A stretch of 64,000 nucleotides of DNA from positions 17,856,001 to 17,920,000 of the forward strand of contig NC_043007.1 of assembly GCF_006345805.1 (NCBI RefSeq), written 5' to 3'. Numbering within the stretch: the stretch's first letter is position 1; the number at the start of each line of letters is the position of its first letter. This document shows positions 9,701 through 64,000 of the stretch, one piece after another. Source of the DNA: Octopus sinensis. Taxonomy: Eukaryota. The notes beneath the pieces are model-generated. The model ran no database searches, was not told the origin of the DNA, and was given only the letters and a program-made list of their open reading frames with translations. Position numbers and translations under genes: made by a program.

Positions 9701-10351
9701 ATCATAGGAAAGGTAGTTGTACTCTAAAAACCGTGTAGTTGGGATTACAGTTCCATCATAAGAAAGGTATTTGTACTCTCAATAACCGTGTAGTTGGGAT
9801 CACAGTTTTATCATAAGAAAGGTAGTTGTACTCTAAAAACCGTGTAGTTGGGATTACAGTTCCATCATAAGAAAGGTATTTGTACTCTCAATAACCGTGT
9901 AGTTGGATTACAGTTTTATCATAAGAAAGGTATTTGTACTCTCAATAACCGTGTAGTTGGGATCACAGTTTTATCATAAGAAAGGTAGTTGTACTCTAAA
10001 AACCGTGTAGTTGGGATTACAGTTTTATCATAGAAAGGTAGTTGTACTCTCAATACCGTGTAGTTGGGATTACAGTTCCATCATAAGGTAGTTGTACTCT
10101 CAATAACCGTGTAGTGGGATTACAGTTCCATCATAAGAAAGGTAGTTGTACTCTCAATAACAGTGTAGTTGGGATTACAGTTCCATCATAAGAAAGGTAT
10201 TTGTACTCTCAATAACAGTGTAGTTGGGATTACAGTTTTATCATAGGAAGGTAGTTGTACTCTCAATACCGTGTAGTTGGGATTACAGTTCCATCATAAG
10301 GTAGTTGTACTCTAAAAACCGTGTAGTTGGAATTACAGTTTTATCATAGGA
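726..10351. repeat. Satellite array, 54/55-bp monomer, about 175 copies
   Basis: Head-to-tail AAAGGTAGTTGTACTCT(AAAA/CAATA)ACCGTGTA(G/A)TTGGGATTACAGTT(CC/TT)ATCATAAG; spacing measured as 55,55,54 at 781/836/891/945; no unique spacers. Confidence 0.98.
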
Positions 10352-12448: not shown

Positions 12449-13105
12449 AGGACGGGAGTCAAAGGTCATAATATGAAAGAAGCGAATAAAACAGGTGACA
12501 TGATTTAGGTCAAAATTGGAGAAATTTGTGTAAATTCATTCAGAGAAATGAAGTAGAAAAATGTGTTGGTTACATGGATGTGACATGAAAATTCTTCTTA
12601 TTCAGAAGATCAACATTTGATTATCATTCACACACGGTGGCGTGTGAACAATATTCTTAAAATCAAACATTTACTCGCGACAACTTCTAGGCTTTGTTAC
12701 TAATTCAGGTCTTAACCAAATTAGATGGTATTTACATTTTACATTTTTAGATTGGTCACGTTATAATTTACATTTCGTGCTAGATAATTTTAAAATTGGT
12801 TCGGTAGGAAAAAAAAAGTTTGAGTCAAACACGTGAGATCTCAAACGGGAGAATAACGCCTGAAATCGACTTTGAGTCCAAATATTTTTTTTAAAAATCG
12901 ATATTTCATTTTAGCTTATATGATAGATCTCGGCGACAGGAATCTATCCATGTTAAAAAAAATTAAAATAAAAAACTATTGGGGCCAAGTGTGTGTGTGT
13001 TATATAATATATATATATATAATATATATATATATAATATATATATATATTAATATATATATATATATATATATACAATATATATATATTATATAAAGGG
13101 GTAAG

Positions 13106-48411: not shown

Positions 48412-49019
48412 TGTGAGTATGCAATAAAATGCATAAAATTATGATATAATAATAAAAAACAAAAAAAAGACAACCTAAATTATCTGGTATTTAATCCTAA
48501 TCTATCGGTGTCTTTTGCCGAATTGCTAATTTACGGGGACGTAAACAAACCGACATTAGTTGTCCAGCAGTGGGGGAGTACAAAGACAAAGACACACACA
48601 CACATGCACGGTCACACACATGCACAGTCACACACACACACACACACACACACATGCACGGTCACACACATGCACAGTCACACATACACACACACATATA
48701 TATATAAAAGTTCAGTTAGAGGTAAATAAACCTCATTAAAGGATAATAATATCCAATGAATTTATTGGTTTCCTACCTATTATTTATTTTGAATATTAGG
48801 TTTAATATTCAAAAATAGGTAATTAAATAAACCGAGGTTTATATTTAAGAAAAAAAAGAAGAAAAAAAGAGATAAATGGTGAAACCGTATGGCATATTAC
48901 CAGTCGATGTACGTCACTAGCCCAGAAAGAATAATAATGATATTTATTAATTACAAAAATAGACATAATCTCTGACAACTTAATTAAAATAATTAAATCA
49001 TTATAAAGTTGAATCTCGT

Positions 49020-49420
49020 CGGAGGTCACACACTCGTGGCATGTCCAACCATTTCCCACCTGTGGGCTCATGTCGAACGACTGCTGTCACGTGTGAGACG
49101 TGTCGGTTTATCAGCCGAGTCTATCGTCAGTATCGTCACGCCTCCTTCATTCAAACGGGAAGGAAGAGCTATTTTTATCATACTTGTGGCTATGGCGAAA
49201 GAATGTATCTGGTCGACGCGTCTGAAAGGATTGGAGACAAACACTTTCCTCTCTGGTCAATCTCTCATCAACTTCTTCAAGTATCACTTGAAAAGGAAAG
49301 AGAGAGTAGAGAGGCAGGTTTTGTCTAGCGAATGTTTAAAAAAAAAGATGGGAGAATGTAGCAAGGATGGCACGTATGAATGACGAAGCCACCTTGAGCA
49401 TAATCCTATGAACCCGGAAA
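49020..49420 (+). pseudogene. L1/Tx1 ORF2 C-terminal fragment
   Basis: HTLVACPTISHLWAHV...AMAKECIWSTR resembles the HxxxxCP...W...AK..IW..R end of Tx1 ORF2. Confidence 0.6.
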
Positions 49421-60350: not shown

Positions 60351-61152
60351 TTTGTTATCTTTAAAAATTTGCTAACATTCAGCTCTCTTTTTCTTTTACA
60401 GTTACTTAAATTTGGAAATAATCTATAAAATTAAAAATATGTATTGTTTTTAATTTTGTATGTTATCGAATGCTTGTAGTGACCTCTGTCTTAAAATGGC
60501 CTAGCTTTGAACCTTTACATAGAGCAATTTCAATTCAGAAATATTAAGAATGTATAAATACACTTTTATACTGGAGCATTATATTTAAATTAAATGCTGT
60601 TCTTAATCTATTTATTTACTTTAGTTGAATTTAATATTAACTTAATATTCGATTCCACTGATGTTCCATTTTCAATACTACTTTTATAGCTGGTACAATT
60701 ATTACCTTGTTGAAATTAACTCCTGATCTCTGGCTTCTCTACCCTATAGCCTTCCTTCTAATGCTTTGTATAATTCTTTGCCGCCTCACACCGTGCTTGA
60801 ATCACAATGCTAAACTGCTATTTTCAGACTTTCTCTTCTTGTTTGCAACAGTTTTTAGTGAGTTTTTAGCCCACTAATTTAATATAATGTCCGGTCATCC
60901 TTCGATAGCTGTAGGAATTAATCCAGCGAGGAACAACAACAATTCGTATGAGTTTTCGAAGACTTCATGTACCTGGTGTATTTATTTCAATCCGGGATGA
61001 GAGCATTTATACACAGCTTGTATATTAACATTTGACAGAACAGACGGATTAACTGGTACTTATTTAATCGACCCCGAAAGGATGAAAGGCAAAGTCGACC
61101 TCGGCGGAATTTGGACTCAGAACGTAGCGGCAGACGAAATACCGCTAAGCAT

Positions 61153-61239
<87 letters not shown>

Positions 61240-61310
61240 AATCTACGTACATACATGCACACATACTTATATACACACACACACGCTCACACACAAACAC
61301 ACACACGTAT

Positions 61311-61642
61311 GTGAAGGCGTATGGATCAATGGTTAAAGCGTCAGGTTCTCAATCGTGAGGGTGTGAGTTCGAATCCCGGACTGGGCTGTGTGTTGTGTTC
61401 TTGAGCAAGACACTTTATTTCATGTTACTCCTGTTCACTCAGCTGTAGAATTGAGCTGCGACACCACTGCTGCCAAGTTGTATCAGCCTTTGCCTTTCTC
61501 TTGGATAACATCGGTGGCGTAGAGACGGGAGGCTGGTATGCATGGGCGACTGCTGGTCTTCCATAAACAACCTTGCTTTGACTTGCGCCTCGGAGGGTAA
61601 CTTTCTAAGTGTAATCCTATGGTCATTCGTGAACAAAGGGGC
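61311..61642 (+). mobile_element. SINE-D
   Basis: GTGAAGGCGTATGGATCAATGG...GAGTTCGAATCCC; matches 13106 copy. Confidence 0.85.
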
Positions 61643-61650
61643 TCATATCC

Positions 61651-61719
<69 letters not shown>

Positions 61720-62255
61720 CACACACACACACACATCTAGTACAGAGATGAGTTTGACATTTATATGAGACGAGAAGACTTAAACACAGATTATAATACC
61801 CTTCCTTCGTCATATCAGATATTACACATAGAGCAGAGAGGTGTACTGTGGATTGCTGGGGTAATCTACCACTCTGGCCCATTGGACTATAGTTTTACGG
61901 GGTTTTTTTCCTCTCTGAAATAAACTTTTGTTTTATCTTTTACAGACATCAACTGAGAGATCAAGAAAAACAACTGCAACAGAAGTACAGAGCCTTAACA
62001 GCATCAGAAGCAACTACTACGGCAACAACTGTGAATATAAAGATTGGCGGAATATCTGTAAGAATTACGGTAATGACTATTGATGTATGAATAGGAACAA
62101 CGCTACCAATGAAACAGAAGTAGCACTAACTGCACTAACATTACGACTGCAACAACAGCTATACCAACTGCACTATCACTAACGACAAAAGCAGCAGCAG
62201 TAGCAGTAGCAGCAGCAGCAAAAAGAACAACAACATCAACAATAATATTATTATA

Positions 62256-62675
62256 TATTTCTTTACTACCCACAAGGGGCTAAACATAGAAGGGACAAAC
62301 AAGGACAGACAAACGGATTAAGTCGATTACATCGACCCCAGTGCGTAACTGGTACTTTATTTATCGACCCCGAAAGGATAAAAAAGGCAAAATCGACCTC
62401 GGCGGAATTTGAACTCAGAACGTAACGACAGACGAAATACCTATTTCTTTATTACCCACTAGGGGCTAAACATAGAGTGGACAAACAAGGACAGACAAAC
62501 GGATTAAGTCGATTATATCGACCCCAGTGCGAAACTGGTACTTTATTTATCGACCCCGAAAGGATGAAAGGCAAAGTCGACCTCGGCGGAATTTGAACTC
62601 AGAACGTAACGACAGACGAAATACCGCTAAGCATTTCTCCCGGCGCGCTAACGTTTCTGCCAGCTCGCCGCCCTT
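62256..62675 (-). mobile_element. SINE-B dimer
   Basis: Units start at 62256 and 62442; 19-bp TSD CAACAATAATATTATTATA (62237-62255, 62676-62694). Confidence 0.93.
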
Positions 62676-62694
62676 CAACAATAATATTATTATA

Positions 62695-63801
62695 ATGTCG
62701 TATTCTGAGGTATCCCGGATTATCGAATTACAAGAGGAACAAGCTCAAACCAATATTCGTTTATCTAATGTAGAAGCAAAGCTTGATCAAGTTCTTCAAC
62801 GTCTTAACCCTATTCAGCAAGTTCGACTGACGGCATTAGAGGGCAAGCTGGATCGTGTTCTAGTACACTTGAGCCCCATTCAGCAGCTCCGCCTCTCTTC
62901 TCTGGAATCTAAGTTAGACCAGGTTTTCCGACATATCGTTAGACAAAGTATTGATCGAGTGCAATATCGACGAGACTCAATCACTGACTCAATATGTACT
63001 GAAGCTACTACCTCAACAAGTAGAACTATTCAACAGAGTAGTGGCCAGCTTTCAACAGGAACCAACAGAACTCCGATAAAATCTCGGACCACTTGTTATG
63101 ATCGTTCCGCCGTTAATCAAATAAAATATGAATGGCTGTTAAACAACCAAACAAATTCTTCTCCGGTCCCTACACGTCTGGACTCGCGGCCATCAACACC
63201 GATCGAGTCATCGAATATTCAGGCACAAGAAGAAAGCCAATCCGGACACAACAGTATGGCGTTGTACGGCTCGGAAATCAGCCAACCCAACTCACCTTCT
63301 CCGAGTCATGGCAGTCGGCCTTCGTCAAGTTTGTCAGTTCAGTTTTGCCAGAAGTCGAGTCTTAACCGAAATCAGACAATTCATTACGGTTCATCTGTTC
63401 AGCATGGAAGTGGTCAGGGATCCCCACAAACCCAGGAGAAAGCAGTGCATCAGTTCGCCAATATCCAAACTTTATCGACGTATGTAAAGCAAAAATTAGA
63501 TTCCAGATATCTGTCTGGTCGTGACCGACAAGAGCTTCGTATTTTGCTTCAGCTTTCAAACTTTGAAAATGTGTTAAGCAATGCTTTGAGAAAAGATGTC
63601 TTGAACAGATTACAAATGTTTAGCGCAGTGGTAACGCATGGATGGTCAGCTGCTTCGAGGATCTCTGCAAGGCAGTCAATCATACTTCAGGATATGACTA
63701 GACGTATGCAGGAAATACAAGTATCCCGTGGAAGTAACCGATTTAAAATATCACGTTTTCATAAACTTGCTCCGAAATCATCTCGAAAGAAAAAAGCTTG
63801 A
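62695..63801 (+). CDS. Intact single-exon 368-aa orphan ORF: N-terminal 22-aa coiled-coil-like repeats, S/Q/P-rich linker, helical C-terminal region, basic tail
   Basis: ATG with A at -3; no stops over 1107 nt; repeats RLxxLExKLDxV with differing synonymous codons; AATAAA at 63939. Confidence 0.7.
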   Translation: MSYSEVSRIIELQEEQAQTNIRLSNVEAKLDQVLQRLNPIQQVRLTALEGKLDRVLVHLSPIQQLRLSSLESKLDQVFRHIVRQSIDRVQYRRDSITDSICTEATTSTSRTIQQSSGQLSTGTNRTPIKSRTTCYDRSAVNQIKYEWLLNNQTNSSPVPTRLDSRPSTPIESSNIQAQEESQSGHNSMALYGSEISQPNSPSPSHGSRPSSSLSVQFCQKSSLNRNQTIHYGSSVQHGSGQGSPQTQEKAVHQFANIQTLSTYVKQKLDSRYLSGRDRQELRILLQLSNFENVLSNALRKDVLNRLQMFSAVVTHGWSAASRISARQSIILQDMTRRMQEIQVSRGSNRFKISRFHKLAPKSSRKKKA

Positions 63802-64000
63802 GAATTATGACATCAACGTTGTCATTAAGCTTTGTTCACAAGTCGGGGCTTGACTGAAATTGTGTGAAATGTGTGAAATTATTCTAAATGGTAAATAAGT
63901 GTGAGAAAACTTGAAGAAGAAAACAACAACGTATGAACAATAAATTCAGTAGGTCATCTCTAAAAACAAACCCTCCCAGTTTATCAAGAAAATAAGGTTG

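Follow-up and report, generated by a model that had tools for sequence, protein, structure and literature searches.

The end of this stretch of Octopus sinensis DNA (64,000 nt of contig NC_043007.1, hereafter the window) raises the question of what is encoded by the open reading frame (ORF) of 368 codons at 62695-63801, and where such a sequence came from. Our comparisons indicate that coleoid cephalopods very probably gained it as a host gene by domestication of the entire ORF1 (i.e. the gene in the gag position) of a compact HEART-like retroelement that is related to the hepadnaviruses.

The reading frame and its cephalopod orthologues

Direct reading confirms that the frame is open over 368 amino acids (aa), and its product is identical to a protein that is already in the public collection. 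The parts of the gene are listed below; structure predictions are from AlphaFold2 (AF2), with the predicted local distance difference test (pLDDT) as the quality measure.

62695-63801, + strand: coding sequence, complete in one exon, with 368 aa and a stop codon (open frame; ATG at 62695, TGA at 63799-63801)
62695-62757, + strand: N-terminal helix lead-in, residues 1-21, SRIIELQEEQAQTNI
62758-62823, + strand: 22-residue repeat unit 1, RLSNVEAKLDQVLQRLNPIQQV, (nearly) invariant in Argonauta and the decapods
62824-62889, + strand: 22-residue repeat unit 2, RLTALEGKLDRVLVHLSPIQQL, where MAFFT sets the single coil of the retroelement ORF1
62890-62937, + strand: repeat unit 3, first 16 residues only, RLSSLESKLDQVFRHI
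62980-63444, + strand: variable linker rich in Ser/Thr/Gln/Pro, residues 96-250, predicted to be disordered from its composition and a pLDDT below 50
63073-63138, + strand: island kept within the linker, PIKSRTTCYDRSAVNQIKYEWL, residues 127-148, cephalopod-specific (invariant columns from P127 to L148)
63454-63720, + strand: four-helix domain near the C-terminus, residues 254-342, for which HMMER, hhalign and the reciprocal profile give homology to the retroelement ORF1
63721-63798, + strand: basic tail, residues 343-368, with ...FKISRFHKLAPKSSRKKKA, in the same place as the Arg/Gly-rich tail of the retroelement ORF1

A word-indexed protein search returned the same protein together with a 366-aa protein of Argonauta hians (83% identity) and a decapod cluster (54% identity). 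The decapod cluster, formed at 90% identity, holds proteins of 369-382 aa and includes Acanthosepion (Sepia) pharaonis. The 90%-identity cluster of the octopus protein itself also contains the 368-aa O. bimaculoides protein XP_014789141.1, annotated as 'uncharacterized LOC106882852', and an O. vulgaris model of 749 aa to which we return below. A literature search on LOC106882852 found nothing. It is conspicuous that the three-way alignment of octopus, Argonauta and decapods shows hardly any change at residues 1-85 and at about 255-368, and that the middle is variable except for the island in the linker.

The non-synonymous (dN) and synonymous (dS) substitution rates were calculated by the Nei-Gojobori method. 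Between octopus and Argonauta dN is 0.083 and dS is about 1.9, i.e. saturated, and dN/dS is 0.043; the corresponding values are 0.017, 0.17 and 0.10 between octopus and O. bimaculoides, and 0.021, 0.13 and 0.17 between two Sepia-type decapods. When the comparison with Argonauta is divided by region, the linker has the highest dN/dS (0.086), the C-terminal part has 0.024, and the folded modules lie at 0.02-0.05. The flanks of the gene in O. bimaculoides are collinear with those in the window at about 89% identity, and the ORF itself is 95% identical. Nucleotide similarity to Argonauta is confined to 62690-63801 and its edges are the edges of the ORF, which supports a plain 368-aa single-exon coding sequence. 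The gene occupies one locus or contig per genome among the genomes in the collection. What these comparisons show, at the level of sequence, is a real and apparently single-copy gene under strong purifying selection in both octopods and decapods, two lineages that separated a few hundred million years ago. The view that this is a real coding sequence is thereby borne out, with intact orthologues and dN/dS values of 0.04-0.17. Its designation as an orphan in the preliminary description is contradicted by the cephalopod orthologues, as well as by the remote retroelement homologues described below.

Neither a reverse transcriptase (RT) nor a tyrosine recombinase was found in the 62 kb upstream of the gene within the window, and no RT or recombinase of the kinds searched for lies within 10 kb on either side of it in O. 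bimaculoides, Argonauta or Sepia. The cephalopod gene is thus shown to stand without any Pol neighbour, i.e. Pol has been lost. An active or recently active retroelement ORF1 in octopus would account for the ORF1 homology and for a single intron-less ORF in a repeat-rich region. It is, nevertheless, barely credible in view of the one copy per genome, the identical position of the O. bimaculoides locus, the conservation of the ORF since the octopod-decapod split with the dN/dS values given above, and the lack of a Pol nearby. The preliminary description had proposed either a lineage-specific oligomerising nuclear protein or a gag/ORF1-like gene, active or domesticated. The domesticated ORF1-like gene stood, on account of the ORF1 homology and of the Pol linked to ORF1 in the elements, and the active one was lost with the single copy and the absence of a nearby RT.

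The N-terminal part of the protein is repetitive. The three 66-nt units that had been noted, starting at 62758, 62824 and 62890, were found as described with all the quoted codons present: RL is encoded by CGTTTA/CGACTG/CGCCTC, KLD by AAGCTTGAT/AAGCTGGAT/AAGTTAGAC and PIQQ by CCTATTCAGCAA/CCCATTCAGCAG. Amino acid identity among the three units is 41-59%. Agreement from unit to unit is 36-73% at codon positions 1 and 2 and 14-36% only at position 3, which is in accordance with the claim that the units keep amino acids while changing codons. A DNA-level repeat search over the unit region detected none; together with the drift at position 3 this points to an old duplication that has been retained at the protein level. 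Inside each unit the hydrophobic residues are spaced 3-4-3-4-3, as read from the sequence, and the pattern is broken at N/S-P-I-Q-Q. The full-length AF2 prediction contains a single long helix over residues 3-94 (pLDDT 60-88), and the spacing and the predicted helix together fit a coiled-coil oligomeriser. The full-length model as a whole has a pLDDT of 48 and is too poor for use.

Homologous ORF1 proteins and the elements that carry them

A profile of the cephalopod proteins was run with HMMER, exhaustively, against 1.84 billion representative proteins, and gave nine matches only. Three of these are generic coiled coils aligned to the N-terminus, and five are small unnamed proteins that match over profile positions 242-351, the best (P0016) with an E value of 2.1e-9. 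When the cephalopod alignment was compared with that of the retroelement ORF1s by hhalign, the two were matched with a probability of 98% (E 1.6e-13, 89 columns). Moreover, when a profile was built from the retroelement ORF1s alone, the five cephalopod proteins reached 65-70 bits with it, an E value near 1e-13 for Z = 1.84e9, and the maximum in a shuffle control for this profile was 7.9 bits (n=200). These searches show, as far as profile comparison can, that the C-terminal helical domain is homologous to ORF1s that lie directly upstream of an RT-RNase H Pol. The invariant pattern of the domain is R.R.EL..LL...RL...V..GW..A, and the AF2 model of the domain alone has four helices with a pLDDT of 77, rising to about 90 across the core.

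The resemblance in layout to retroelement ORF1 proteins, which had been pointed out from the sequence alone, extends to a collinear alignment, with significant homology in the helical domain. In both proteins an N-terminal coil is followed by an acidic or Ser/Pro linker, the helical domain and a basic tail. The N-termini were aligned by hhalign over residues 7-38 of the cephalopod protein and 3-34 of the retroelement ORF1, with P 1e-3 and a probability of 22%. Since matches between coiled coils arise readily, this is no more than suggestive. The linker had been described as a disordered S/Q/P segment and the end of the protein as basic; both descriptions agree with our counts (21% Ser, 10% Thr and 10% Gln over residues 96-250, with pLDDT below 50; 10 Lys/Arg among the last 28 residues), and the tail aligns to RGGRGGGRGRGK-type tails of the retroelement proteins. 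According to the alignment the cephalopod linker is far longer than that of the retroelement ORF1. Its island, PIKSR..YDRSA.N..KYEWL, has 15 positions that are invariant across octopus, Argonauta and decapods and is absent from the retroelement ORF1. AF2 predicts a short helix at residues 138-150, in or near this island, which may be a binding motif gained after capture.

Searches with other tools returned little. Pfam gave only sub-threshold coiled-coil noise on the octopus protein (E up to 10), the PDB sequence search with the cephalopod profile gave no match, and the domain model had no match with E below 0.6 when PDB and BFVD were searched by Foldseek. No relatives among host genes outside the coleoids were found by the word-indexed search or among the 1.84 billion representatives.

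The elements themselves could be described from the DNA that encodes the unnamed proteins. P0016 (185 aa) is encoded at L008:81-638, directly upstream of a 615-aa Pol ORF (695-2542) with RVT_1 and PF00336, the hepadnaviral polymerase C-terminal domain. P0022 (221 aa), at L011:10001-10666, is overlapped by a Pol ORF that reaches 12461 and likewise has RVT_1 and PF00336, and in L013 the gene for P0024 is followed downstream by pieces of RT and RNase H. The Pol of these elements stops right after RNase H, and its N-terminus is acidic and disordered-looking. Searches of L008, L011 and L013 revealed neither a tyrosine recombinase nor an integrase or protease, and the Pol proteins matched no other Pfam family at E <=0.1, with no terminal-protein family recognised. 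The copy in L011 is about 2.84 kb long and is flanked by identical 40-nt direct repeats (9892-9931 and 12692-12731). L008 (2677 nt) and L009 (2673 nt) come from two sequencing runs and have a common 5' end; L008 shows no terminal overlap of the kind expected of a circle.

The family as a whole is characterised by a length of about 2.7-2.8 kb, an ORF1 of 177-221 aa, and a Pol with the order acidic spacer, RT, RNase H. Its loci are L008:1-2677, L009, L011:9892-12731, L013, L014, L010:2877-3218, L012:958-1311 and L007:10001-10645, and several diverged sub-families are present in the runs SRR29346471 and SRR29346472 and in two ENA assemblies. In at least two sub-families, whose ORF1s are only about 28% identical, the domain lies beside Pol. 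A single sample contains multiple, diverged copies of the elements, and some copies stand on large eukaryotic contigs beside host genes, which indicates that they are genomic retroelements of an animal host. The family is rare and undescribed-looking. Its ORF1 is represented by about ten proteins in the databases, the word-indexed search with the domain profile added just a few further unnamed ORF1s, and scans of the IMG/VR and JGI metagenomes for relatives found none.

The rarity of the family bears on the direction of transfer. An old cephalopod or animal host gene might have given its domain to retroelements, and the number of known ORF1s, about ten, does not by itself prove the opposite direction. 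This reverse course is very unlikely in our view, since at least two sub-families with such divergent ORF1s both carry the domain next to Pol, since no host-gene homologue outside the coleoids appears among the 1.84 billion representatives, and since the host gene is intron-less.

Some further features of the element copies are recorded here. L011:6058-6884 is an older 5'-truncated copy that has the same 3' end point as the full L011 copy. 5'-truncated Pol 3' ends are found upstream of ORF1 and in the same orientation at L007:9509-9685 (at about 316 nt) and at L011:6058-6884 (at 3.4 kb), which suggests head-to-tail arrays or 5'-truncated insertions. L007:19550-20645 (- strand) is an unrelated DIRS-type element with RT, a Dam-like methyltransferase and a tyrosine recombinase, 9 kb from the ORF1 copy; as this case illustrates, the proximity of a recombinase does not mean that it is part of the element in question.

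HEART is the name given to hepadnavirus-like retroelements of arthropods, i.e. ticks and insects (Gong & Han 2018, as cited in PMC12691608 and PMC11551314). For the comparison with RTs of known groups, pieces of RT domains were taken from Data set S4 of PMC12691608. The RTs of the family score 95-158 bits against the tick HEART (28-39% identity), 70-79 bits against nackednavirus, 62-96 bits against DIRS, 41-60 bits against Gypsy and 27-55 bits against Ngaro. The neighbour-joining tree groups the family with HEART and nackednavirus at a bootstrap value of 68% and separates it from DIRS and Ngaro. PF00336 covers the thumb and RNase H in four members with 25.0, 26.5, 33.3 and 36.8 bits, above the cut-off of 22.4 bits; the DIRS relatives reach 16.6 bits or less. 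A first label, 'DIRS/Ngaro-like', which came from a database search with Pol, was dropped after the direct comparison with HEART RT domains. By the sequence of their RT and RNase H regions the donor-type elements are HEART-like and hepadnavirus-related: their RT clusters with HEART and nackednavirus, and their RNase H region passes the PF00336 cut-off. The octopus window differs from these in that it holds only the ORF1-derived gene and no element. The family that the preliminary description was unable to name is accordingly the ORF1 of HEART-like retroelements.

ORF1 was also compared with the core protein of the viruses. It might be a true homologue of the proto-nackednavirus, nackednavirus and hepadnavirus core, in which case the octopus gene would be an exapted capsid gene of the hepadnavirus lineage whose product could form shells, as Arc does. 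The donor Pol is both HEART- and hepadnavirus-like, the elements have a core-plus-polymerase plan at about 2.7-2.8 kb, and their 40-nt terminal direct repeat recalls the redundancy of the pregenomic RNA (PMC12691608). ORF1 is similar to the cores in lying upstream of the polymerase gene, in its size of 177-221 aa, in being all-helical, and in its Arg-rich C-terminal tail, the RGRGRG tail being like that of nackednavirus and proto-nackednavirus cores. In the core alignments of Data set S3 of PMC12691608 there is a conserved L.R.LW...FGW helix and a RGRGRG or SPRRR tail, which LSRLQ..VVTAGW and RGGRGGGRGRG in the retroelement ORF1s resemble. A core profile was made from C-terminal pieces of eight animal and environmental viruses, the human virus being excluded. 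The best hhalign path sits exactly on the helix 4b/5 motif of the core (L.R.L...GW); however, at P 0.06-0.1 and a probability below 1% it is not significant. Pfam gives no core-family match, no terminal-protein domain is recognised in Pol, and Foldseek gives no match with E below 0.6 in PDB/BFVD, although this test is weakened by the use of a monomer model for a fold that is dimeric. The cephalopod protein differs moreover from the cores by its long coiled coil and its 155-residue linker, both of which are missing from them. Homology with the viral core is therefore doubtful, in contrast to the origin from a HEART-like ORF1.

The upstream flank and the gene models

Three further features flank the gene.

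62256-62674: young insert of two tandem units resembling a short interspersed element (SINE), 419 nt in all, 20 nt upstream of the ATG; the two copies, of about 186 nt, are 95-98% alike
62236-62255 (5' copy) and 62675-62694 (3' copy, abutting the ATG): target-site duplication, a perfect 20-nt direct repeat, TCAACAATAATATTATTATA
63938-63943, + strand: AATAAA, a possible polyadenylation signal 137 nt past the stop, as read from the sequence

The orthologous site in O. bimaculoides is empty, with a single copy of the target site at L017:9981-10000, which indicates that the SINE-like insertion is young. The insert is not part of the ancestral gene and now lies within the 5' leader. Simple repeats occupy 61111-61880 and 62180-62235. 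They comprise (CTATCTAT)-type and (CA)n/(GT)n tracts, which produce spurious ORFs on both strands, and a CAG/CAA-rich tract directly before the target-site duplication.

The 749-aa O. vulgaris model (CAI9729695.1) was considered as the true structure of the gene and rejected. Of its upstream exons, the last alone can be placed in the window: the region 61944-62060 ends as an exon at 62057, with GT at 62058, and is joined to an AG acceptor within the ORF (62711-62713). This splice bypasses the ATG, the upstream exon was not found in Argonauta, and the two other annotations give 368 aa, RefSeq gene models of this length being among the available ones. CAI9729695.1 is probably a chimeric prediction, perhaps triggered by the SINE insertion.

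Synteny with Argonauta, for which tblastx seemed to speak, was apparent only; it was produced by BLAST sum statistics and by one strong match that is the shared tail of a long interspersed element (LINE). In the window this is a 124-aa ORF at 49009-49383 (+ strand), the C-terminal tail of a LINE-type ORF2 with the H..CP...W motif. Its identity to Argonauta L001:7920-8240 is 43%, which reflects a common repeat family, not synteny.

Proposed history, function and significance

Capture of a whole ORF1 would be the simplest history of the gene. After capture, the N-terminal coil unit would have been triplicated to give the 22-residue units, the linker would have been lengthened and would have acquired its conserved island, and the Arg/Gly tail would have been converted into a Lys-rich one. 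Several points weigh against this account of the gene. The orthology with Argonauta and Sepia is based on best hits and single copy, not on synteny. The Logan contigs are collinear with genomic DNA and so are not proof of mRNA. The support of the RT tree is only moderate (58-68%). No such element was seen in any cephalopod sequence, so that the donor lineage in molluscs is inferred. Pfam, the PDB sequence search and Foldseek are all negative and give no functional handle from structure or family, and the mechanism proposed below is an analogy.

The protein may retain activities of ORF1. Its long coiled coil at the N-terminus and its helical domain could mediate self-association, and the basic tail could bind nucleic acid or provide nuclear entry; the helical domain and the tail would then take the places of the assembly domain and the nucleic-acid-binding tail of ORF1. 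By analogy, we tentatively suggest an oligomeric scaffold or an RNA-/DNA-binding protein in an ordinary cellular process, a proposal that has somewhat less than even chances. A housekeeping scaffold is favoured because the folded modules have dN/dS values of 0.02-0.05. A restriction factor would behave differently. Here the domesticated ORF1 would disrupt the assembly of retroelements or viruses related to it, in the manner of mouse Fv1 or of the Ty1-derived factor of yeast. The derivation from a retroelement structural gene, with oligomerisation and domain modules kept, would suit such a role, and restriction by gag-derived proteins has precedent (PMC10951436). Yet an arms race is hard to reconcile with two folded modules that have remained almost invariant over a long time (dN/dS 0.02-0.05, and hardly any change between octopus and Argonauta), and no related active elements occur in the cephalopod sequences examined, which makes this function unlikely.

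Among known cases, the LAP2alpha domain comes closest in kind. In mammalian TMPO and ZNF451 it represents a domesticated DIRS1-like ORF1/GAG, with dN/dS of 0.16-0.38 (PMC4495291). The two cases are alike in that the first ORF of a retroelement with RT and RNase H, of a type without long terminal repeats, was captured by the host, forms one large exon and is under purifying selection. They differ in that the cephalopod protein has no Pfam LAP2alpha match, that its donor is HEART-like, not DIRS1-like, and has no tyrosine recombinase, and that it is encoded by a stand-alone gene, whereas the LAP2alpha domain is an alternative 3' exon in a gene that already existed. With Arc, PNMA and RTL/SIRH it shares the conversion of a retroelement structural gene into a conserved host gene, whereas neither its sequence (Pfam) nor its fold (Foldseek) matches Gag or capsid, and the donor class is another. 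The likeness to LINE-1 ORF1p is a loose one of layout, i.e. a coiled coil and then a nucleic-acid-binding part; there is, however, no Pfam L1 ORF1 match, and the homologues of the cephalopod protein are tied to a HEART/hepadnavirus-type Pol, not to a LINE ORF2.

With its origin from a HEART-like ORF1, the octopus gene is a new case of a retroelement structural gene turned host gene, and a literature search found none from HEART-like donors or in cephalopods. Host genes of retroelement origin such as Arc, PNMA, RTL and LAP2alpha have repeatedly proved important in cell biology. If ORF1 were in addition homologous to the viral core, coleoids would have kept a capsid gene of the hepatitis B virus lineage since the octopod-decapod split; no earlier host gene from the hepadnavirus lineage would then be known, and retroelement ORF1 would be connected with viral core at the level of sequence. 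For the cephalopods, an 'uncharacterized LOC' becomes a gene with a known origin and a defined domain plan. For the poorly known compact retroelements that adjoin the ancestors of hepatitis B virus, the same comparison reveals an ORF1 family, which bears on how the capsid was acquired.

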